Positions 23,741-62,392 of a DNA stretch of 64,000 nucleotides are shown here, piece after piece. The notes beneath the pieces are model-generated. The model was not told where the DNA came from. It worked only from the letters and a program-made list of their open reading frames with translations, and did no database searches. The DNA lies in NCBI GenBank assembly GCA_030704615.1, contig CM060732.1, positions 64,790,001-64,854,000 on the forward strand. Direction: 5' to 3'. The stretch's first letter is position 1. Every line of letters starts with the position of its first letter. A program made the translations under genes and the position numbers. Source of the stretch: Takakia lepidozioides (lineage: Eukaryota > Plantae > Bryophyta).

Positions 23741-25810
23741 ATGAAGGCTTGGCGGAAAGCCGCACTATGTGCCAGAGGTCAAGCACAATCTGTTGAGGAA
23801 GTCGACAATAACTCTTGTGGGGATGTGAGGACAATATGTAAGGCAGGGCAACTGAAACAGGCACTGCTTATTTTGAATAATCAAGGCATCTTGGCAGACT
23901 CCAATACATATGTTTGTCTCTTGCGGGAGTGCATCAAAAGTGAAAATCTTGAAATGGGAAGGGAGGTGCATGCCAACATTGTCCAAAATGGATTCAAGCC
24001 AAACATCTTTCTCCTCAACACCCTTGTCCACATGTATGCCAAGTGTGGTAGCGTGGTGGATGCACGTCTAGTGTTTGACAAAATGGCTGAACGAGATGTG
24101 TTTACCTGGACTATGATGATGGCAGGATATTCTCAGTGTGGATGTGGTAGGGAGGCTTTAGCGATCTATGAGCAAATGATTCAGGAAGGGTTCATCCCCA
24201 ACAATGTCACGTTCATTTGCGTTCTCAAGGCCTGTGCCAGCCTAGGTGCCCTGGAAAAGGGAAAAGAGGTACATGCTAGCATCATCAAATCTGGAATTGC
24301 ATCAGATATCATTCTGGAGACTGCCCTTGTTACCATGTATACCAAATGCGGGAGCATAAGGGAAGCATGTCAAGTGTTCAACAACATGGCTCAAAGAAAT
24401 GTGGTTTCATGGAGTGCAATGATTGCAGGATATGCTCAGCTTGGGTGTGGCAGGGAGGCTTTGGAGATCTATCAGCAAATGATAAGGCAAGGAGTGACTC
24501 CTAACAAGGTCACGTTCATCTGCGTCCTCAATGCGTGTGCTAGCCTGGCAGTCCTGAAAAAGGGCAAAGAGGTTCATTCTGTCATCCTCAAAGCTGGAAT
24601 CCCGACCGATATCATTCTCGAGACTGCCCTTGTTGACATGTATGCCAAATGTGGGAGCATGAAGGATGCATTTGAAGTGTTCAATAATATGGTCCAACGA
24701 AATGTGGTCTCATGGAGTGCGATGATAGCAGGATATGGTCGCGATGGGTGTGGTGGGGAAGCTTGGAAATTGTATGAGCAAATGGTCCAGGAAGGGGTGA
24801 TGCCTAATGAAGTCACGTTCATTTGTGTTCTCAATGTGTGTGCTAGTCTGGCAGATCTTGAAAAGGGCAAAGCAGTTCATGCTGATATTGTCAAAGCTGG
24901 AATTGCATCGTATATAGATTTGGAGAACACCCTTGTCGACATGTATGCGAAATGCGGGAGCTTGAAAGATGCACGCCAAGTCTTTGACGCTATGTCTCAC
25001 CGAAATGTGGCCTCATGGAATGCGATGATGGGAGGATATGGTCAACATGGGTGTGGTGTTGAGGCTTTTGAGATGTATGATCATATGATACAGGAAGGGG
25101 TGACACCAAACAAGGTCACCTTTATTTGCATTCTCAATGCATGCGCCAGCCTGTCGGCCTTGGAAAAGGGCAAAGAGTTCCATGCTGACATAATCAAAGC
25201 TGGAATTGAGCAAGATATTGTCCTCAGGACTGCTCTTGTCGTTATGTATGCCAAATGCGGGAACATGAGTGATGCACGTCAAGTGTTTGATGCAATAGCT
25301 CAACAAGATGTCGTATCGTGGAGTGCGATGATTGCAGGGTACGCTCAGCATGGGTGCGGTAGGGACGCCCTGCAACTATTCAACCAAATGCAACAGGAAG
25401 GTTGGAAACCTGATAGAATCACCTTTATGAGTGTTCTCTCTGCCTGTAGCCATGTGGGCCTGGTGGAGGAAGGCCTCCACTACTTTGACTTGATGATACG
25501 AGATCATGGCCTCACTCCTACAGTGGAGCATTTTGGATGCATAGTGGATCTTCTTGGTCGTGCAGGGCGATTGGATGAGGCAGAGGATTTTATTAATAAA
25601 ATGCCAGTGGAACCAGGTGCTGCAGTGTGGAGGGCTTTGCTTGGTGCCTGCAGAGTTTATGGCAATCTGGAGGTAGCAGAACGTGTGGCAGATTGCCATT
25701 TCAATTGGGATCCACAGAAAGCTGCAACTTATGTGCTGCTATCTGACAGTGGCAGATGCGACTATACAGGTATGATGCAGGACAAAGGTGTCATGAAGGA
25801 ACCTGGATGA
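23741..25810 (+). CDS. PLS-class PPR protein (RNA-editing type) with E1 and shortened E2, no DYW
   Basis: Five ~101-aa PLS triplets (MY.KCG, SW.AMIAGY, PNKVTF), S2 HFGCIVDLLGRAG and E1 VWRALLGAC; ends KEPG*. The true start may use an upstream exon. Confidence 0.93.
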   Translation: MKAWRKAALCARGQAQSVEEVDNNSCGDVRTICKAGQLKQALLILNNQGILADSNTYVCLLRECIKSENLEMGREVHANIVQNGFKPNIFLLNTLVHMYAKCGSVVDARLVFDKMAERDVFTWTMMMAGYSQCGCGREALAIYEQMIQEGFIPNNVTFICVLKACASLGALEKGKEVHASIIKSGIASDIILETALVTMYTKCGSIREACQVFNNMAQRNVVSWSAMIAGYAQLGCGREALEIYQQMIRQGVTPNKVTFICVLNACASLAVLKKGKEVHSVILKAGIPTDIILETALVDMYAKCGSMKDAFEVFNNMVQRNVVSWSAMIAGYGRDGCGGEAWKLYEQMVQEGVMPNEVTFICVLNVCASLADLEKGKAVHADIVKAGIASYIDLENTLVDMYAKCGSLKDARQVFDAMSHRNVASWNAMMGGYGQHGCGVEAFEMYDHMIQEGVTPNKVTFICILNACASLSALEKGKEFHADIIKAGIEQDIVLRTALVVMYAKCGNMSDARQVFDAIAQQDVVSWSAMIAGYAQHGCGRDALQLFNQMQQEGWKPDRITFMSVLSACSHVGLVEEGLHYFDLMIRDHGLTPTVEHFGCIVDLLGRAGRLDEAEDFINKMPVEPGAAVWRALLGACRVYGNLEVAERVADCHFNWDPQKAATYVLLSDSGRCDYTGMMQDKGVMKEPG

Positions 25811-27586: not shown

Positions 27587-29259
27587 TTAAGGTCCTCACC
27601 GATGTCACAAACTGGAGACAAGTTCAGGGAAGTTTTATGCCTAACTTCATTTTGTTCAGACATTCTTTGTGCTTCTGACATTACCTTAGATCTTCAGGCG
27701 CAAGTGAACTTCATCTAGCTGGGTCAGTTCTTCCTGCCTGATATTCAGGTACTTGAAAATCTCCTTCACCTTGTTCCAACAGGTCTTAGCCTGCTGTTTA
27801 ACAGGACAGTCTTGCTTCCAAGAAATAGAGTCGATTATCCTAGGGTATATGGTATTAGGCATGCGATCAACTGACCTTGAATTCATCACGTCGAGAGCCA
27901 AACTTGCCCCATGTTAGCTGTTCTAGAGCAGGCAGACATGCTCTCTTTGAGCACCAAAAGCTAAATGATCCTAAAGACTTAGCATGGTTGCAGTTGCCAA
28001 TCCACACGGCAGATGGGTACTTCAAGGTAGGCCCAATAACGTTGCAAAGTATGGTCCTTTTAACTTCAGAGTCAATCCCTCTGAAATGGAGAAAATGAGT
28101 CTGACCCAAAGGTTTGTTTTTAGCTGTTTGAATTGAATCACTTTTTGTATATGCGTATCCCAGTTACAACTGGAGGAAAACTGAACACCAACATATGTGT
28201 AGGAGGGGAGCACAGGGATCTCTTCACAGCCCACCGCGCATTTACTAACATTGGCTTCTAGCCTCCAAATACCTCTTCACACAACCAATCGACTCCTGAA
28301 GACTGGATGGAGTATCCCCTAGGCCCGCGAATTCATCTGCAAACACAAGAGCTGGTATGGCAGCATGACCCTCCTTTTACCCAAACCCCTTGCTTGCCAT
28401 CTCTTCAAGGAGCTGATTAACGAAAACATTGAAGAGCAGTTGGGAGAGGGTACAACCTTGAGCTACACATCAAAGAAGTTACACTTCTGGCCATTAACCA
28501 TAACACAACTTTTAGTGTTCGCTGAACCATCCATTGTTCCCCTGACCCCAGCACGATACTGTGCCAAACCTTTTTGACATCAGGAAGAAACAAAGGTTCT
28601 TCTTTTGACCTTCATTGGGTTGTCTGGCTTAGGGTAAGGATATGGTCTACGCAGCCCCTATTTCTCCGGAAGCTGGCCTGACCTTCATGAAAAACATGTC
28701 TAGAATCCAAATCAACCAGATGGTTGGTTGTTGTTTTACAAGACAGCTTGTCAACTGCAGTAAGAAGCTTAATACCATGGTAGTTTCCTGGCTCTTCTAT
28801 GTCCCATTTCTTGTACAGATTTTTTGATGACACCCTCTCTCCATTTAAAGGGTATTATTTGTCTTCCACATAAGGTCAAAGAGGAGGGCAAGGGCCTCTA
28901 TCATTGGATTGCCACCACGCTTAATTGGCTTGTTGACAAGGCCATCACCCTCACTGGCTTTATAGCTTCATCAATCTCAGAAGAACTAATGAATGTGTTG
29001 TATCTCTTTGTGGTCTACTCCAGTTCATCAGGGCTGTCTGGATCATAGGAACAGATTTTTTTTCTACTGTATCCTTCCATTCTTTCAAAAACCCCTCACT
29101 ATTAGAGCTGGATTCATGGCTGTAGTGCGTTTCAAAGGTTTTCACAATTGCAACCATAGAAGTCACGACTGCACCCTTGTTATTCCTCGAAGTGTGCACT
29201 TGCTGTCCGTTTTTTGGCCTGTACAAACGTTGTAAGACAAACCAGAATCTTTATCATCA

Positions 29260-29488
29260 GCATACCTTCAAACAGTTGCAGGGCTTCCCTACAACAACCA
29301 TGCTGGGCATATCCTGCAATCATTGCACTCCATGAAACCACATTTTGTTCAGCCATTTTGTCAAACACTCCCTTTGCATCCTTGATGCTCCCGCATTTAG
29401 CATACATGTCCATGAGGGCAGTGTCCAGATTGATACCTGGTACAATTCGGACTTCTTTACCCTTTTCGAGAGCTGCCAGGCAGTTGAG
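29260..29488 (-). pseudogene. PLS-PPR fragment embedded in LINE ORF2
   Basis: LNCLAALEKGKEV...DTALMDMYAKCGSIKDAKGVFDKMAEQNVVSWSAMIAGYAQHG, very like repeats of the neighbouring PPR gene; LINE sequence on both sides. Confidence 0.88.
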
Positions 29489-29793
29489 GTTAATTTCATG
29501 GGACAACTCTTCCAAGTACATTTTCTTCTGATCCCTTACCAGCTGATTCACATCTTTTCGCAAGTGGTCAGCTCCTTCAGCCCTTGCCTGCTCCTCTTCC
29601 AAATGAGAAGAGTAGCCAGGCTTTCTAATCTTATGGGCAAGCTGCTTTAGGTGAAGACCTAGGGAGAACCCTAATGAGTCATCCTGTTCTCCGTTTTCCC
29701 GTTCTGTTCTAGGCAAAAAGTTGTGAACAGAAAAACAAGATCAGTCTGTAATTATTTGAATGTATTATAGCCACATTCAAGGAAAGAGAGAGA

Positions 29794-41256: not shown

Positions 41257-41647
41257 ACAGGTGTGATAAACATCAACGTTCATTGTAGGATTAGTTAAGC
41301 CATAAATGTGGCCTCCCACAAGGCCATTCTGTTGACACTGTTCGATGATGGCAGCTAAATAGTTCCCGCTTGTTGGCATGGGACACATTGCCCGCAGTCA
41401 CCACATATGTCAGTGGCCGTTGTTCCAGAAGAGCACATATTGGTGCAGGTACCAACGCAATTATCTTGACAGCAGTCAGTGTTACCTTTAGCGATCAGAC
41501 AATTCACGCAACTGTTCGCATCTGCGGCACTAGGCCTCTACTGACTTGACATATTACGTCCACATTTATTCGTCCGCTTACAAGTAAGAGGATCGTGAGG
41601 AATGCAAAGAGCAGTTGCAGCCCTGAGAGCATGCTACGGGATGCCAT
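41257..41647 (-). pseudogene. Disabled copy of the secreted Cys-rich protein at 58063-58458
   Basis: Relative to copy B: 4-bp deletion near 41533, 1-bp deletion near 41367, and stop TGA changed to TGT. Confidence 0.9.
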
Positions 41648-42070: not shown

Positions 42071-42692
42071 CACTACAGGAAAAAAAAAAAAGGGGGGGGG
42101 GGGGAGTTTCGACACCGCCACCACGTCGCGGCGTCGCAAAACAACCGGAGGGGCCAATTTTTCGACACCCGAGCGTCGCAGGCCTGTCGCAAAGGCCTGC
42201 GACAGTCGTATGAACGACTACGGGAGGTCAATTTCATATAAAACCATGGTACAGTCATGGTCAAAGTCATGAAAACCATGACTACCACGGTTTGGCAGTC
42301 ATAACTACCGCGATCTGTTGTAGTGGTAGGGCGCCCCCAGCAACGCTTTTGTGACGTTGAGGGCCGCAAAGCCCACAAAAAAAATAAAAAATAAACCCCC
42401 ATTATGGCGATGTTATTGCGACGTCCCAGCATCCCAGAGGCGCTGGGGCGCCCTCAGTGACGCTTTTGCGATGCTAGGGCGTTGCAACGCCATTTTTTAT
42501 TTATTTTTTGAATCCGCCGCAGCGGGGGCCCGCTTTCCTCTTCATGCCACCTTACGATGGCGGGACGTCGCAACGTCGCAAAAAGGCGCCGCGGGGTTGG
42601 CGTCGCAGGCTCATCGCCGCCCGGGGCGTGGGGACGCGGCTGGCGTGGAAACCCCCCCCCCCCCCCCCCCTCTCCCTCCATTTGTTGTAATG
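42071..42692. mobile_element. GC-rich CACTA MITE with CAA target-site duplication
   Basis: caa|CACTAC...GTAATG|caa; empty site gagctcaacaacaatgac in copy B at ~58871; subterminal poly-G and poly-C tracts. Confidence 0.88.
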
Positions 42693-50238: not shown

Positions 50239-52279
50239 TTTATTTGGTATGTTAGATCGATGTCATGTACTGTACATGTATACCAAACTTTGATGTTGTG
50301 TTTCTAGCTCATGAGTTGATCAGTGAGCATGTGTACGTTTCAGTTATTGAGAGCAAAGTTGTGACTTTGAGGCTAAATCTTTCTTATCCGTTCACTGCGC
50401 AGCTGTTAGCAATGTAGAAGCTGTTACATTGGCCATGCTTTATTGAGCCTCAGCATTGTGTATGGGTGTGTACAATTTCTTTCCTCAATCCACAAGGCAC
50501 TGGGTGATTTATTGGAAGTTAAGCTTGGGACTTCGGCTGCTGCATGTTGTGTCTGTGATTATCTTTTACACTTCAATTCTGGCCGGCCCTCTCTCTTGCC
50601 AGCTGCCCTTCCAGTTCTCCCCGCCTCCAAGTACACGCATAAGACCAAGTAGGATAATCTATGGACATAGAGGACCAAAACACGTGGGTTGGATCATTTG
50701 GAATAGAGAGCCTCAGGGCCATAGCTTGTGCCACCTTTTGGCATGCCTCGTCCAGCTCGACCATGTATGCATCAGATGGCCGTTATAGGCAAGATGGAAA
50801 ATATGGTCCCCCACGTCAGCCCTTTCTCTGGCATGTGCTGCCAGAATTTGTGCTTCATGAGGCTCTCGTTGTGTAATTCTTACAGCCAAAATTTGTCTCC
50901 ATAGCTCTCACTTGAAATTCCAGTCTCCGGGTGATCTCTTCTACCTCTTCTTCTGCTCGTTTGATCTGCAATTTTTCTCTCCCAATCTTGCGCACTTTTC
51001 TTGCAAGGTTTGTTCTCCTCCTCCATCTCCCTCCTCTGTTTGTCACTGGTGGCAAAATACTCCTCCAGAAAACCTAGAGAATACTATCTCTCACTTTGCT
51101 CGGTGAAATGTGTCGTGTCTGGGAGATGGCATAGAGGTAGCAAATCAGTAATCCAAGGCAGCATTCTGTAACAAGCTACTCACGGATTTCAATGAAGCCC
51201 TTGCTCTGTTTAGAAGAGTATTGAGGGTGTCCTTCCCACTCGGCGGGGAGAAGAAATCCCTCCACCAATATTACACCTGTTGCATGGAGATACCAGATGC
51301 AGCCCTCTGGAGACAAAAGCGCAGAACTGCAGTTGTCCACCTCAAGGTTTTGGTGCTGTAGGTGGGGAAACGACCACTTGCCTCTAACCAAAGGTCACCA
51401 ATGCCCTGTCCGCAGTACTTATGTCTTTCCACTGAAAAATGTGCGTGTACCAATTCATATGGCTCCTCGGAGGAAGAGTAGCACACCCCCAAAACCCTCC
51501 CCCCCAAAACACACAAACATATTTTCCGTTTTCTGTGTTCAGAAACATATTTATATACATCTGTTACAAGGTGATGGCCACTGTTATGAGCTCCAGCTGC
51601 TTCATCAATCCAAGCTTCCGCCCCGGGGCATAATCTTGTACCATACTCTGAACTGCTTTTACTTGGTTGTTCAAGTCTGTTGGATCGAACGTTCTCTCCA
51701 CCAGGTCAAATGCTCACCGTGGTCTCAAAAATAGCAACAGTGCACATCATTGCCACATGGACATCCGGAAATTTAGTGTTGTACACGTGAGTTACAGATA
51801 AAAGGAAATCGCAAACTTTGGGGTGCCTCATTGCAAATTGGCATGCTTGAAACATTGTACCCCAACAAGGATGCCGAAATTGAGAGCTGAGATCATGCCC
51901 ACAGACATGTTCAGCTCACTAGATAAGGTTCCGGTTCTGCGGGAGAGACATTCAATGTCCTTGGTAAAGTAGTTTGGCAGCTGCTGTGCTTTGAATAAAC
52001 ATGTCAGGGCCTCGCTATAGATCGAAAGAGTCACCTGTAGGGTGATAATCATCCAATACTTCGGTATATCTGATTTACTAGACATAGCTAGGATACAGCA
52101 TTTTCTTTGACATACCTTCTCTTCATATTTGACAAAGGGGTCACTTTCTTACTGCACTACCAAAAAGCCAGCCACACCAAAAATGATAAGCTCTACACTC
52201 CCTGCAGAATTTGCCAAAGGCCAAAAGCTTGACAAAACCTTTCCATCCGGTAAAAAGACAGCAGGGCTCTTCGAGTCTG

Positions 52280-55200
52280 GTCCAAGATTGCAGATACGGC
52301 ATGTAAGGGCATCAACAACACCGGGTCCCGTGGCATTGAGGAAATCACTGTGCGACTGGACACTGGAAAACCCAAGGGGGGAAATTACCAGAGGCTTTTG
52401 ATTGGCTCCTAAATAGAGGGTGTCAATCAATCTGTGAAGCTCTTTTACATCCGCAGCATACTGCTCGGCTGTACCGCTGGCTCCCACACCGGACCCACTG
52501 AGCTCTTTCCGTGCACAAATGAATTGTAAACATATCAATGTACACTAGCTCCTGGCTGGACAAATACCTTCTGAAACAAATCCCCTGGTCTATAGCAGCT
52601 GCAATGAACATATGAATAAGACTAAGGAATAAGTTACATGCTGGAGCTTCAGCAGGAGGTGTGGAACCATGGGAAATATCAAGGTTAAAGCTGGGGTCCC
52701 CTGCTAGTAGGGGACCCCAGGATTGTCTGGCTACACGTTTACTTGTACAAGGAAAGGAGACCAAGATGGACAGCAGTAAAGATGAGCAAATGAAATGAAA
52801 CGGTGCTTTATACCGTCCGCGGAAAGCTCGTAGAGCTTATGGGACAAAATGGAAGAAAACATGAGAGAGAGAGAGGAACAATCCAGAAAAACCAATTAAT
52901 GTTCTAGCGATTGTCTAAGGGTGAAGGCCTCGTGTAGGTAGGCTGCCACGCATTTTTGATCCTCATAGTGAAAGACATCAGTGAGAGTTTGGGTTCCACT
53001 GAATAAACAGTGAAATCTCCCACGGATCTCGTAGTATAGAGGGCAGTAGAAGAAGAAGTGTTCTTCAGTTTCAATTTCCTTGCTGCGCCCTATGCAAGCT
53101 GGACATAGGCGGTCCTCCCGTTGCAGGTTTTCCCATCTGCCAGTCTCTATCCGTAGGTTGTGGGAACCCACCCGGAACCGCCCCAATGCCCTCAAGAGGG
53201 AAGGAGATAAGGGTGCTGAAAGGTAATTTGGTCTCAAGATTCTATCATCGCGGAGCACCAAGAATGTCTCTCGATAGAAGTGGAGCTTTGTCGTGAGATT
53301 GGGTAGCATCCAAGTTCTCTTGACATGTAATTCCATAAGCTCTCTCCGAATGAGTCTGTTGCGGTCATGTCTGGATGTGATGTCCACCTCATCTGGGTTC
53401 ATTGGTAATAGGAAAGCAGTAGAAAGTCCGTTACGTTGAAATAAACTGTCCACTCGAGCATACCAGGAGTTCCTGAAACCTGCAGCTTTGAGCCTCATAG
53501 ATGTTGTGAGGGCCCTTGCCACTAGCCCTTTGGGTGGAAGGGCCTGCAATCTATGGAGAAAGATTGTAAGCCTGAAGAGGGCCTCGGATTGCAATGGTAC
53601 ACATGCGAACTCTGCACCTAGGATCTGAGATGGAGTTGTGCTCCTGGCGCCAAGCATTGCTTGGAGAAAAGATGACTGTAGTGGTTCCAAATTCTTTTCC
53701 CACCAGGAGACAGGGACACCAGGTGCCCAGAACTCACAACCATAGATGGTAGCAGGGCTGACGACGATGTCAAACAGCCACTTTTTGGTCGGGGGATGCC
53801 GCAGATGTATTTGCGGCATTTGGCCTGAAGACGGAGGCGCCCTTACCTTTAGTCAACCTGTCCAAGGCAGTGGCTGCAAAGTGAAACCTGGGGGAGTGGA
53901 TAACCAGACCTAGGTACCGGTATGATTTCACAATCTCAATTTCCTGCTGGTTGAAGATGAATCTACGATCAGCCTGGCCATTGAAGACCATGATCTTGGT
54001 CTTGCTAAGATTGACCTGCAACCCATAGTCTTTGCAGAACTGTTCCAAAATTTTGGAGATGGCGTTGCAGAAAGACCGGGGATTGTGCCAAAAGGGCAAC
54101 ATCATCAGCATAGAGGAGATCTGATTGGGTTGGTCCCCCATCCAATGGGACCCCAACCCCATGGTTTTTTGATATGTAATTCTCCAAGGAAAGGAAGGAT
54201 GCGGCAGGTGGTGTCCAGCACATCAAGACCCCATCTCATGCATAATTTATTGTGTGAAAAAGAAAACTAGACTGTTGCAACATACCGGTTCTCTCAATTC
54301 TGCAAGAAATAAGCTGTCCCAAAAGTTAAGAGGGCTTGAAGGTAAATTCTTGCTGAGGTGATCATTACGCATATATAGAAGGCGGAAGGCAGTGGAAAAG
54401 TCAGCACCAGTGATGCTCTTAGTTGGCTTTCCAAGTCAAGCTGGGCATGTGAGCTGCTTTTACAGTAAGGTAGAGCACCCACTCCATGTTTAACATCATC
54501 TACTTGTGTATGTGATACATTCCTTGAAAACCTCCCATTAACAGTCGAGTCTCCAGATACTCACGAACATGAGCACAGAGCCGATTCGGTTATCCATGAA
54601 GTAGTATAGTACTCAGACCTCAGCACAGTTTCTAAAAGTAAATAGATTACAAGATACTTGGATACATGTTAAGAATTAGGATAAAGTTAAGCTTTTCCAC
54701 TTGAAAACAATCAGCATGGAAGTCTACCCGAAGTCTAGGAGAAATTCTTACTGCAGCCAGGGTTCGGGGACCCAGCATGGCCAAACAGGTTGTCTCTTTC
54801 ATCGGTGCCACAAACCAGACATGAAGTTTCTGTCATGCCATATCCTGCGGCAACTCGCCCTACCACAGCATCTGCACCCACCCCACATTTAATGAGAGTA
54901 CATCCTTGGCATATTGAGCACAGACAAATTGCGAAGTACGAATTTACCTTGACCAAATGTTACAAACAAAGTCTGGAAAAGCTAAATTATGTGGGGGATG
55001 CTGGAAGATGGGGGACTGGGGCACTTAGCTGTAAGTGTATGTCTAGTTCTTCGGCAACTTACTATTCAGCCAATTATAGCTAAATCCGTTTTCAGATTGT
55101 ATCAATTACCTGTGGTACTACCAAAGCTGACTTTAGTAGTACTGGAAGCTTTGGCAAGTTTTCTTTGATTATGCTTGCAGCTTCCATTGGATCCTGGTAT

Positions 55201-56540: not shown

Positions 56541-58062
56541 GTCGATCTGTTACGTTCTCTTTACAATGACTGCAAGACTGCCGAGGCATGACTCCGTTGC
56601 ACTGCAGTTGCCAATAAGACTCGCAGCAACATGACTCTTCTTAATCTCGCGCTAATTCCTGAACAGAAGTACAGAGGCTGTGATTGCACGCGCCATGGCG
56701 TAGTAGCACGGACACCTTGGCATCGAGATGTTGGACAGTCGGAACAGAACTTACGTGGACTGCTTCATATCCTCATGACTGATCCGAGGACAAAATTGGA
56801 CGCAGTCATTGAAGTCAAGGAATCATCACTGCCGTTGAAGGCTGAAGCCCTACACTTGGCTCTTACGACAACAACCGCCAGTTTGGTTAGTACATTGTGT
56901 CACTTTTAAAGGTTTATCAGATTCGAACTGCCCGTGTAAGCGAGCTGTTGACCCCCTGTTGACAGTGCGCTCTGTCCATCAGGTGCCACTAGCGAAGAAC
57001 AGCACAGCAATTCAAACGCGCATGCCCATCTCAGCACAGGGAGGAAGGATATTGAGTTCATTCCGAGAGTATGAATCGCTTTTATAAGAGGCACATATCT
57101 ATGTCGACCCCAATGGAGCTCATAATGCAGGTGCCAGTAGAGTTTGAGAAGGTAAAGGATGAGAAACCCAGCGGATCATTTGAATGCTGAGAACCTAAAA
57201 TCAAATGCGTCCCAGAAAGAAGAAATCCCCTGGGAGAGCTTTGATAGATTGCTCCAAAATTTCACCCATTTTTTCTTTCTTCTAACAACCATCCTTCGAA
57301 AGTCCATAGTGGGTAAGCAGATTTGCAAGCATACGATGTTCATGATGGTCGCAACTTATCTCAAGTGGCAATAAGGAAACTAAGTAATCCTCCCAGGTTT
57401 TGTGGTGTTTGCAGTTTGCAGCAACGTTTTGCAAGATGGCCAGTACTTAATTCAAGCTCTTGTGCCCTTGTAAACACAGAAGCTCGGTTCCAGGATAACA
57501 CACATTTCTTTCTAGAATGGTTCCAATATAGGCATTCACCCCTGGATAATATTACATGAACCTCGGCTGAGAGCTCAGAGACTGTGAGATGTCATCATCT
57601 AGGAAACTTATAGAAAGTGAACAACTAAGCTCTGATCCTTATCGACAAGATCACCTTACAGGCGTGATTAGCCCAAGGTGTTCCTCTCTCTTGTATGGAG
57701 AGTCGAAGACCTTAACTGTACTCAGGTTAGTTTGCCCCCAAGGTGAAAAAAACATGGGGTCCCACAAACAAGTATGCCCGTGATATTATCAAACGTGAGG
57801 CGGAGAAATGGCCAAACAGAAATGACGTTACTTGTAAAGGTACACGTAGTTGATGAACAGTATAATATTTGGAGCTTGTCAGTTCAAACTGCAGAAGGAC
57901 TAAAATAGAACACAGGCCTGCATCATCAGGCTCGAGTTATTTACGCTAGCTACTGCAGCCCATGCCTTCTCTTTTAACGATAAACATATGTACTTTATAG
58001 TCAGCCCTGCATGCAGGCCTGCAGCTTTGGTCTAGATAGTGATCTGGCGTGAAAACCATGCC

Positions 58063-58458
58063 TCAAGTGTGATAGACGTTAACGTTCACTGTAGGATTAG
58101 TGAAGCCATAAATGTAGCCTCCCACAAGGCCATTCTGTTGACATTGTTCGATGATGGCAGCTAAATAGTTCCGGGCTTGTTGGCATGGGACGCATTGCCC
58201 GCAGTCACCACATATGTCGGTGGCCGCTGTTCCAGCAGAGCACATATTGGTGCATGTACCACCGCAGTTATCTTGACAGCAGTCAGTGTTACCTTTAGCG
58301 ATCAGATAGTTCACGCAGCTGTTCGCATCGGCGGCACTAGGACTGCCTCCACTGACATGGCATACTGCGTCCGCGTTTACTCGTTCGCTTGCAAGTAAAA
58401 GGATCGTGAGGAATGCAAAGAGCAGTTGCAGCCCTGAGAGCATGCTTCCGGATGCCAT
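58063..58458 (-). CDS. Secreted 12-Cys small protein, 131 aa (fungal Ecp2/Hce2/KP4-fold-like)
   Basis: Hydrophobic signal peptide ending VNA|D; 102-aa mature part with 12 Cys; intronless, intact ORF with a paralogous pseudogene. The family assignment is inference. Confidence 0.85.
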   Translation of the reverse strand: MASGSMLSGLQLLFAFLTILLLASERVNADAVCHVSGGSPSAADANSCVNYLIAKGNTDCCQDNCGGTCTNMCSAGTAATDICGDCGQCVPCQQARNYLAAIIEQCQQNGLVGGYIYGFTNPTVNVNVYHT

Positions 58459-59440
58459 GTTAATGAAGGATGGCGTTGGATGCGGCTGCTGGAGTTGCTG
58501 GGATTGAGAACTTGGTCAAAAAACTGCACAACGCATTTGATTTTCTGTTAGGGATACCATGTCAAAAACAAGAGAGAAACAAAGCAGAGATTGAGTTGGC
58601 CACATGGCCACATTGAGCAACATTGAACTCGTGAAGTATGTACACTATCAAAGAGAATCTCAGAATCATGCAAGTTTCGTGTATGCATTAACTAAAGGTC
58701 TTTCAACTCCTGTCAGTGTTGTAACACTTTTCGAATGCAAGTGAGAACTAAGTGGTAGTATAGATTGAAGGTCATGAGACTACATTCAGCGGCCATTTGA
58801 CTACATTTCGAGATAAGCTATGGCGTTTCAGATAACTCGATCACCTAGCACAGATTGATCAAGACGACGTGAGCTCAACAACAATGACTAAGCTTGAATC
58901 CTTGACGTTTTTGTACATGTTTGCAGGTTGATGAATCCTCTACTAACAATGATGGTTTCAATCGAAACTGTAATAAGGCTCATAAGGCTGCTGGCAGCTC
59001 ACCCACGTTGATCACTACACTTGCACGTTCGGTTGGAGTGAACCAGAGAGCTTGTCTTGTCGGTGTGGAAGATCACGATGGTTCTTCCAATTTATACAGC
59101 AGAGCGCGTTGGATGGATATACCCCCGCAGATCCGATGTGTTGACCGTCAGACCCCATGAAGATCGTTGCTGATCACGCGGATAAGGAACCGCAGAAAAT
59201 CACCGCAGTAAGCCAGTGAGTAGACTTTGTAGCCCATGACTTTTAAAACCAGATGTACAAAATATCCATAGTTTCATCCGGACCCGTCTCCATCCTGTTC
59301 ATGGGACCTCCCAAAATGTTTCTTTTCCTCTCTCTGCCATGTTGTGGTGTACAACACCTAACTTAGACTTGATTTCAGACTGGGAAGCCTACCGCAGTTG
59401 TTGATGAGGGTGGTGGAGTTGGTGGTTGTATTGACTATGT

Positions 59441-61005
59441 ATTAAAGGAAATCTCAAGGTCAATATGATTTCTTAATTGTTGGATGGTCGGGCGTCAAAC
59501 TTTATTAATAAAGTATTGAAAGTTTGAAAAGTGAGTAACACAAGAGTTATTAATAAAGTATTGAAAGTTTGAAAAGTGAGTAACACAAGAGTTGCCGAAA
59601 TGAGAACCGAGACACCTACTGCAGGTTGCTATACAGGAAGCCACCGGTCACTAAAATGCATGGTGAGTGTCACTAAATCTGTGAACAAGTGGAATAAAAG
59701 ACCTGATGTGACTTCGATATCTGCTCCACCCACGCCGATAGTAACACTTGCCTCTATGAATTTCTCTGCACCCTTCACCACCTTGTCTTTCCCTCTTGCA
59801 ACCACTTTGATCCTACCTGCCATAAGGTAGTGGCATCTAGAAGCGTGCGCGACCTTATTATGTCCCCTATTTTTGATGAATGAAGTCGCCCTTTTTCATC
59901 CTAGTAGTGTGCACTTTTGTAAAGGAGGCGATTCAAGGTTAATTATTGCTTTGGATTAGAGATGTTTTGGAGTACAAGGGGCTTATTTAATGGTGCATTA
60001 GTGAAGCTAATTACATAGCAGCCTATTGCTTCTTATTTCAAATTCCTAATTTGTTTTTGAAAGTGGAGGCAAGTGTTTTGGGACAATGGCCAATTAATAC
60101 AACAGCCAATGCAACTGGGATGCATGGTGCACCTGTTATATAGGTTACAATGCACACATTTTTATCATGCTTCCGTTGCCAAGGATGGCGGAAGAATGGG
60201 AAATGAGGGAGCTGTGGAGTCTTCTAGCTGTGTCCACGGGGTCGGCTAGTTTAGGGTTCTCATATGGCCATATAAGAGGAGTTGTAGGTCAACTCAGGGC
60301 ATACTTAAGGGAGTTGTATATGGTCAGATTTTGCACGGGTCGTCGTCCCTCCAAAGGAAAGTTATGGGTCCTTCCATAAGTAGATGTGCCCAATCCCGCG
60401 TTGGGAGACCGTTACTTTTGGGCCCGCACATGGCTAGTTTTGTTAATTTTTGGGACAGTGTAGGTGCCATCTTGTGCACTCAGGGCAACTTAAAGCACAT
60501 ATCAAGGAGGATTATATGGCATTATAGGATGGACCTACTGAGCAGTAGTGGGATAATATGCACTTTGATTTTGATAATTCATATATAATACATCCGTGAT
60601 TGGAAAATTATGTGCTTTGCACAAATGATTGTTGCTTCATTTGCTATTCTGCTCATATAATTTTTGTGACACTACACCCTCTGAGAAGTTGCACACTGCT
60701 TGAAAGCACACTTCAAGATACCACTACCTTACCTGGCCCGACCCCCAACATAGAAAACAACTACTCATGCTGGCTCTGGCTCTCAAACCGGTATCTTGAA
60801 GTATCTAGAAACTGGAAAGTCAGCTAGAACTAGAACTATCTAGAAAGCCCACGCTAGAAAATCAATCCTTAATTTTTGGACCCGTCATTTCATTAATTAA
60901 TACAGGTGGCCTTCCTACATTGGCCCCCTCTTTTAACTCCTAAACCACAATAACTCCTGGACCATCTAGAATCAGCGCCGAATGAAACTGCTCTACATAT
61001 TTTGG
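59441..61005. mobile_element. Unclassified ~1.56-kb insertion in duplication copy B, with a 45-bp tandem duplication (59502-59591)
   Basis: Copy A reads gactatgttgcggagccac contiguously; copy B has this block between the two halves. No clear TIR or LTR. Confidence 0.6.
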
Positions 61006-61770
61006 GGAGCCACATAATAATGGAGGGCCACTTTAGACGACTCTCCAAGACTCAAAATGCATGGATCCTATTGGTCAAGGGCATTTTCTTGGTCATATTG
61101 GCTTTAAAGCTAGCAGCCGAGACCAGGAAAGTTAGGAATGACATGGCGTCTAGGTGGCACTGATGTCTCTCTCAGTGGATTGCACCCAGCAGCCTTGATG
61201 TCAGAGTCCTCCACACCAGTCATACCTTAAAGACTACACTCAACAAGTGGGTGGGGCTGGAAGCAGTAAATGCTGGATGACCATTCTCACTCAGAAGGGT
61301 AGCCCATTGGATAAGCCCGGGGAACATATCAGTGTAGACTTACAGGTCTTACAATGGAACCCCATCTGTGAGGGGATTTTGTTGGCGACTTCGCATCACG
61401 TGGAGAAAATCCGGTCAGCTCATGTTCTTACATCGTCAATACCTTTATTGGCCCACAACATTAATTGTGTGGGCTGTACTTAGTCATGCCAATCAGGAAA
61501 TCAGGAAGTATTGACATGCTAATATCTACCCCGATCCTTTAAAATTAAAATCAAACAAGGGAAGGGGACAATTAGAGAGTATATGTCCTGATGTAAATGG
61601 CTCCTGCATGCGGCCCCACACAGCTGATTGCAGGCCGTAGAAAAATGGCGACTGCATGTCAGGGCCAATTGGCCATTGTGTACTTTGGAAGTTCATAGAA
61701 TAAGTACGTGGTGGAAGCGGTAGGGGCTTGGTGACACTTTCAACGTGCATACTTGGGAGAGAAGCACACA

Positions 61771-62100
61771 CGTACGCACCCACAAATCAAGGAATTCATA
61801 TTGATCTAAAGAGATTGTCAGGGTGGTCAAAGGAGGCCGGCTATGTGCCTGACACACACTCCTTATTGCATGATGTGGAGGAGGAGCAGAAAGGAGTTTT
61901 CTTGCTTCCAACATAGTGAGAAGCTGGCCTTTTCTTTTGGGCTCATCGGTATACCCCCTGGGACGCCTGTCCATGTCATCAAGAGCATTTGGGGTGTGGT
62001 GACAACAGTACCACCAAAGATTGTTAGGAGCAGCTATTGTATGGGATGCAAATGTTTTTTAATCCTTCCACGACTGTGTTTGTTTTTGTGGGTATTAGTG
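61771..62100 (+). pseudogene. Orphan DYW deaminase-domain relic
   Basis: THPQ.KEI...KEAGYVPDTHSLLHDVEEEQK...HSEKLAFSFGLI.IPPGTP.HVIK, with degraded CxxC and terminal DYW; frameshifts; no PPR array upstream. Confidence 0.88.
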
Positions 62101-62392
62101 AAAGGGACAACATGCACAACAGAATGTGTGTTGTATCACAAGTGCCAGTGGGTTTGTGACAACCTGTAATTCTTTTGTAACCAGAGAGCAAAGCAGACAT
62201 GATTTGCATTGTTGAAGAGCTCTCTTCTTGAGCTACGCATGTCAGAATTAAGTATGGTCACCAGTGAATTCAAGGAAAAACTTTTGAGTTTTTCAGTGAA
62301 AGATACATTCAGCTTTGGAGAACATTTGAATACATATTTTATTCAAGGAGGAGTTCCTGTTTGTAGAAGTACATATCCCTTGTTAAACAATA

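Follow-up and report, generated by a model that had tools for sequence, protein, structure and literature searches.

The window, a 64,000-nucleotide stretch of the Takakia lepidozioides (Bryophyta) genome, carries on its minus strand a short open reading frame that is a real plant gene, apparently expressed. It encodes a small protein with a predicted signal peptide and a cysteine-rich domain, and is arranged as follows.

58063..58458, minus strand: coding sequence, 131 aa from ATG to TGA without an internal intron; signal peptide and predicted KP4-fold domain
58372..58458, minus strand: predicted signal peptide, residues 1-29, from hydropathy and alignment, with putative cleavage after V-N-A
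58066..58371, minus strand: mature 102-aa domain, acidic (pI ~4.3), with 12 Cys
57760..58523, minus strand: putative exon 2, with 65 nt of 5' UTR, the coding sequence and ~300 nt of 3' UTR; bounded according to the run X5 contigs
58524..59002, minus strand: putative 5' UTR intron, 479 nt, with a GTGAG donor, a TGCAG acceptor and a CTAAC branch-like site at 58547-58553
59003..59065, minus strand: putative short non-coding exon 1, its start site approximate and placed from the donor and the TATA position
59090..59096, minus strand: TATA box candidate TATAAAT, found in the second copy too

This reading frame did not arise by chance, since its Calypogeia fissa homologues are 70-75% identical to it, dN/dS is 0.11-0.20, and contigs of a probable RNA run are confined to 57760-58523. 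Three such C. fissa proteins are encoded on megabase contigs. Against two of them dS is ~1.0-1.1 and dN/dS is 0.18-0.20 over the whole frame and 0.11-0.13 over the mature part; such ratios (0.1-0.2) indicate purifying selection on the gene.

The gene is located in genuine plant DNA. The fungal-like protein and the transposon-rich surroundings might suggest fungal contamination of the assembly or a non-functional relic, a scarcely credible explanation that is already refuted. Plant RING, PPR, DUF1223 and GH79 sequences occur in the same window, contigs of one DNA run cover the unique flanks at an even depth of 54-57x, and the Calypogeia, Ceratodon and Diphasiastrum orthologues sit on megabase contigs or chromosomes; a relic is further contradicted by the dN/dS values.

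Elsewhere in the window are a long PPR gene and two fragments of PPR or DYW-like type (23741-25810, 29180-29716 and 61728-62169), and a GH79 (heparanase-like) fragment at 52149-53819 adjoins LINE-like reverse-transcriptase remnants. High-copy repeats with a summed DNA depth of 600-2800 occupy 59640-61100, just upstream of the gene. A weak tblastn match at 1355-1450 (E 0.003), which contains a stop and faces an ORF of a retroelement on the other strand, was put down to chance. At position 58173 (codon 96) the window encodes Arg, whereas every contig covering the site, from three runs, and the close homologues have a Gly codon; this Arg is a private allele or an assembly error.

The predicted signal peptide has its hydrophobic core at residues 10-23 (9-residue hydropathy up to 2.9), followed at 27-29 by V-N-A, a motif retained in the plant homologues. 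Cleavage after A29 would release the 102-aa domain, whose 12 cysteines stand at positions 33, 48, 60, 61, 65, 69, 73, 83, 86, 89, 92 and 106. Only two basic residues are found in the mature domain. The signal peptide and 12-Cys mature domain given in the preliminary description agree with the reading frame, the hydropathy and the cysteine count, with the strand now fixed as minus, and the motifs quoted there are present in the protein. Across the family, the presence and absence of cysteines covary in the pairs 61-89, 65-86, 48-73, 69-83 and 60-92, which leaves 33-106. This pattern points to three core disulfides common to fungi (33-106, 60-92 and 69-83), while 65-86 and 48-73 would be extra pairs present mostly in plant members, with 61-89 as the third non-core pair. 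The family signature comprises C-x-(T/S)-x-x-S-P-x3-D, C-C-Q, C-T, G-x-A-x-x-x-I-C-G, C-x-x-C and C-x3-G-x-x-G-G.

Transcript structure and gene copies

Contigs of run X5, whose type as RNA is a guess, cover 57760-58523 and differ by only a few letters from this copy, with the flanks bare except for repeats. Transcription is therefore probable. The contig set stops at 58523, which is exactly the TGCAG acceptor, 65 nt before the ATG. Both donor and acceptor are kept in the second copy, in the two Calypogeia copies and in one further relative, with the sequence between them not kept. Because of these conserved splice signals and the end of the X5 contigs, we infer a 479-nt intron in the 5' UTR (59002-58524). 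A paralogue contig from run X6 joins 58502 to 59056 with 79 letters between, where 74 are expected after intron removal; the same contig extends upstream of the TATA box and thus may be DNA. The preliminary description of the gene as intronless consequently holds for the coding sequence and probably not for the gene as a whole.

Two observations in relatives concern the same region. At L003:835-1389, the UTR, donor and acceptor are retained in a close relative whose expected start codon is altered; the locus does not yield the listed protein and is probably a pseudogene or an unspliced copy. Upstream of the second Calypogeia copy (L001:1403-1813), the UTR intron's 3' end, together with the beginning of exon 2, has apparently been duplicated in tandem.

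A second copy lies 17 kb from the intact gene, and is interrupted by an insertion.

41260..41647, minus strand: second copy, a pseudogene, 88% identical in nucleotides (over 925 nt), with the frame broken near 41535 and near 41368
42071..42692, strand not assigned: CACTA-like non-autonomous insertion of 622 bp with a 3-bp target duplication, located within the pseudogene's 5' UTR intron

The 622-bp element has imperfect terminal repeats, and the intact copy shows the corresponding empty site near 58875. DNA depth summed across the coding sequence is 267-378, compared to 54 in the unique flanks, pointing to some five to seven related copies as a rough estimate, depth not being the same as copy number. 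In addition, one DNA contig of run X1 jumps from 58018 to 58530, keeping both flanks and lacking the whole coding region; it is a paralogous locus from which the gene has been deleted. Tandem copies are also found in Calypogeia and Diphasiastrum. Taken together, the copies, the pseudogene, the copy without coding sequence and the tandem arrays constitute a birth-and-death pattern, which is typical of defence genes.

Predicted fold and sequence family

An AlphaFold2 model built with a 128-row alignment (pLDDT 95.7, pTM 0.87) places two helices on an antiparallel sheet. In Foldseek, the top match is Zt-KP4-1 (8acx; E 5.6e-4, TM 0.67), followed by Y3, UmV-KP4, LDL, DUF26 and Gnk2. Exhaustive comparison with VIA-align gave Z scores of 11.1 for Zt-KP4-1, 9.9 for UmV-KP4 (1kpt), 7.8 for Y3, 7.4 for LDL, 6.0 for DUF26 and 4.9 for Gnk2, with unrelated chains at 3.8 or below. 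Superposition on Zt-KP4-1 and UmV-KP4 spans 88-95 of the 102 residues, and the model shows the alpha/beta sandwich of the KP4 superfamily; the protein likewise has the small size, cysteine richness and hydrophobic N-terminus of that superfamily, with secretion predicted. Among structures of the Atlas, matches reach TM 0.81-0.82 to fungal clusters, versus 0.60 to a Gnk2 cluster, and Foldseek against viral models returned no match. The model thus predicts a KP4 fold, with HCE2/Ecp2 as the nearest sequence family. The preliminary description had proposed a resemblance to Ecp2/Hce2/KP4-fold proteins from the spacing of motifs, and the structural comparison bears this out, with an HCE2-domain protein ranked first by both programs and UmV-KP4 second by VIA-align; a fold unrelated to KP4/Ecp2, the outcome it had named as contrary, was not found.

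Sequence comparison is less direct. A phmmer search over 1.84 billion representatives returned 128 matches at E<=1e-3, delimiting a Pfam-less family of at least 120 clusters. The query itself has no Pfam match to Kp4 (PF09044), Hce2 (PF14856) or DUF26 (PF01657). None of the 128 aligned members matches Kp4 at E<=0.1, and a profile search of PDB sequences did not retrieve 1KPT at E 10, in keeping with the earlier proposal that the family stands apart from canonical moss KP4. Hce2 is matched by 5 of the 128 members at E<=0.1 (best 2e-7), weakly to moderately, and the Ceratodon member scores 16 bits against Hce2, where the cut-off is 25. Judged by these profiles, the family appears to be adjacent to HCE2/Ecp2 and not a member of it. 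The remaining Pfam and PDB sequence matches, to NADH_4Fe-4S (E 0.11), alcohol dehydrogenase (E 0.05) and FLT3 (E>1), were set aside as noise.

Against a profile made from the non-plant rows, the query obtains 107 bits, a value that is partly circular as the rows were gathered with the query. Since shuffled sequences with fixed cysteines reach at most 18 bits, the link between the query and the family is not merely one of cysteine spacing.

Distribution and origin

Named plant members of the family, their taxa taken from cluster look-ups, come from Calypogeia (several), Marchantia paleacea (four), M. polymorpha (Mp2g18750), Riccia fluitans, Ceratodon purpureus and Diphasiastrum complanatum. A fern member is represented by a contig from the Cyclosorus parasiticus transcriptome (PMC6913697), for which an epiphyte source is possible. 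Three fungal members are named, from Mycena pura, Cylindrobasidium torrendii and Cladosporium fusiforme, and the nearest Atlas clusters belong to Ascomycota and Basidiomycota, in both of which the family is probably widespread. About 100 matches are unnamed and were taken as fungal from their sequence style and the Atlas taxa; for example, the pro-region before the first cysteine has a median of 72 residues in the fungal type, as against 35. No seed-plant or algal member occurs among the named matches, with about 25 of the 128 assignable to an organism. Among plants, the family has a greater age and range than the preliminary description supposed.

Several members deserve separate mention. The M. 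polymorpha protein (Mp2g18750 / Mapoly0137s0007) bears the UniRef name 'Gnk2-homologous domain-containing protein', which was rejected, given the lack of a PF01657 match and a model that fits KP4/HCE2 much better. A secreted protein with four tandem domains of the family, from metatranscriptomes (L007:2-1522, protein P0137), falls in the plant-like clade; in some contigs its gene is split by the gene caller. The Ceratodon gene (L010:10001-10546) lies on a chromosome, carries an intron of its own where the signal peptide ends, and clusters with fungal-like rows; it is perhaps a separate transfer into mosses.

In an unrooted tree of 66 rows and 105 columns, with a weak, mostly unresolved backbone, a plant-like clade unites Marchantia, Riccia, Calypogeia, Diphasiastrum and the fern sequence (support 91/97). 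The query groups with its Calypogeia orthologues, the Ceratodon gene stands next to fungal-like rows (85/84), and the free tree splits the plants into several groups. Constraining the unrooted tree to one plant clade gives a p-AU of 0.11, or 0.19 without Ceratodon, values at which a single plant clade is not rejected. The family could have been a vertically inherited plant one, an outcome that the preliminary description had named as contrary to it. This is partly so, as the best matches are Calypogeia orthologues, but the next relatives are fungal and do not form a seed-plant family.

The most economical reading of these sequences is that the family likely passed from fungi to plants in one or a few old events. 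Transfer in this direction is favoured because of the larger fungal diversity, the patchy range in plants and two precedents, the KP4 genes of mosses and the fruit-body lectins that bryophytes and ferns possess (PMC11228847, PMC11906373, PMC12513842). Without such a transfer, the family would be an ancient eukaryotic or plant-born lineage, such as a divergent DUF26/Gnk2 offshoot, that was kept patchily or passed from plants to fungi. The UniRef label of the Marchantia member would fit this history, as would plant monophyly, which stands at the p-AU of 0.11 in an unrooted tree, and certain metatranscriptome members of no known source. However, PF01657 matches no plant member even at E 10, the query does not have the DUF26 C-X8-C-X2-C motif, and the model of the Marchantia member ranks Zt-KP4 (Z 10.7) and KP4 (10.2) over DUF26 (6.1) and Gnk2 (4.8), with Y3 at 7.8 and LDL at 6.5. 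In combination with the far larger diversity of the family in fungi, these results make an origin without fungal transfer very unlikely.

Fungus-to-plant transfer, as the preferred reading, can be extended to a single acquisition by the land-plant ancestor; liverworts, mosses, lycophytes and ferns would have retained and expanded the family for antifungal use, and seed plants would have lost it. The family would then be a third plant KP4-fold lineage beside moss KP4 and DUF26/Gnk2. This extension is possible, though doubtful; that DUF26 itself descended from such a transfer got no support and is highly improbable.

Proposed function and comparison with known systems

We lean, with limited assurance, toward a role in which the protein is secreted to the apoplast, is stabilised by six disulfides, binds a specific fungal surface target and slows hyphal growth. 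A fungal gene would have entered plants horizontally long ago, once or a few times, and been domesticated through a plant promoter, a 5' UTR intron, tandem duplication, and birth and death of copies. The signal peptide would direct the product to the apoplast, where the six disulfides may confer protease stability. Binding to a glycan or protein on the surface of hyphae would then slow growth, as with Zt-KP4-1 and UmV-KP4, possibly via disturbed Ca2+ signalling. A cationic, membrane-lysing peptide is unlikely because the protein is acidic.

Antifungal use is thus probable by analogy. Zt-KP4-1 reduces fungal growth by 91-95% at 5.5 uM and leaves wheat leaves unharmed, and UmV-KP4 disturbs Ca2+ homeostasis, as summarized in the same paper; within the KP4 superfamily, inhibition of fungal growth or disturbance of Ca2+ is shown for these two proteins only (PMC12382754). 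The sole mature lysine of the query is not conserved even in a close paralogue. UmV-KP4 needs lysine K42, and its channel-blocking contact is accordingly not to be assumed here. Two points count against an antifungal reading: lectins (Y3, LDL, Gnk2) are built on the KP4 fold as well, and KP4 of mosses reportedly influences how the moss itself develops (PMC11228847).

Each of these two points leads to a different function. With the same family and origin, the protein may be a secreted lectin or glycan sensor for microbial or cell-wall carbohydrates, similar to Y3, LDL or Gnk2, with any antimicrobial effect being indirect. The fold it has in common with Y3 (Z 7.8), LDL (7.4) and Gnk2/DUF26, its acidity with two basic residues only, and the four-domain tandem form in the plant-like clade would all suit such a protein. 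Tandem domain forms are common among lectins. Yet the two toxins score 2-3 Z units over the lectins, and we consider a lectin unlikely. It is also conceivable, and decidedly unlikely in our estimate, that the protein was co-opted as a signal or growth regulator acting on the plant's own cells through Ca2+ gradients. Such a role would suit the strong purifying selection on the gene and its presence in a transcriptome that looks unchallenged. It would also parallel Physcomitrium patens KP4, which, as cited in PMC12382754 and PMC11228847, alters the Ca2+ gradients of moss cells and influences development of the protonema. The tandem arrays, pseudogenes and deleted copy, on the other hand, resemble the turnover of defence genes and not a stable developmental gene.

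In the openly accessible main texts that were searched, no description of this KP4-fold family was found, including for Mp2g18750; published HGT tables may list it as an unnamed orthogroup. It is seemingly an undescribed family common to fungi and spore-bearing land plants, and an unannotated set of KP4-fold proteins, predicted to be secreted, is thereby recognised in liverworts, a moss, a lycophyte and probably ferns. In databases its members appear as hypothetical proteins or under a mistaken Gnk2-like label. Should the family be antifungal, early land plants would here once more have turned fungal weapons to their own use, the surprise being limited by the fungus-derived KP4 and lectin genes already known in bryophytes. 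Marchantia Mp2g18750 offers a model-plant gene for testing the poorly understood action of the KP4 fold. Were a single ancient acquisition true, the family would represent an old branch of plant immunity that has gone unrecognised, testable in that same gene, and would offer crops a stable antifungal scaffold that they lack.

Among known systems, Zt-KP4-1 / Zt-NIP1 (PDB 8ACX; HCE2/Ecp2, PF14856; KP4 Group 2 of PMC12382754) is the best structural match, with an rmsd of 2.7 over 95 residues in addition to the Z and TM values given above. Both proteins are small alpha/beta sandwiches, the query being predicted as secreted and having the five Hce2-matching relatives. In contrast to Zt-KP4-1, the query is plant-encoded, has no Hce2 match itself, shares only 12-16% identity and would form six disulfides instead of two. 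The Ustilago maydis virus KP4 (PDB 1KPT; PF09044, Group 1) has the same fold and is cysteine-rich and, as predicted for the query, secreted, yet is 11-12% identical, and its Pfam domain is matched by none of the 128 members.

The moss KP4 genes (Guan et al., 2023, as cited by later papers) provide a precedent for transfer from fungi to bryophytes. Compared to these, the present family is wider in plants (liverworts, moss, lycophyte and fern data), and it is a separate sequence family, so that a separate acquisition would follow. In the KP4 inventory of PMC12382754, plant members are moss KP4 and Gnk2-type proteins only. The same inventory describes fungal Groups 3 and 4, in which a KP4 fold is similarly present with neither the KP4 nor the HCE2 domain of Pfam. 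In the Atlas, the clusters closest to the query (TM 0.81-0.82) are unnamed fungal ones.

DUF26/Ginkbilobin-2 (PF01657) and the fungal lectins Y3 and LDL are secreted and share the fold distantly (Z 4.9-7.8), and Gnk2 is antifungal. The query differs from them in its cysteine spacing, its lack of a Pfam match and structural scores to them clearly below those to KP4/HCE2. Though unrelated to the query in fold and family, the fungal fruit-body lectin genes of bryophytes and ferns show a similar distribution, as fungal-derived defence genes that are present in spore-bearing plants and missing from seed plants (PMC11906373).
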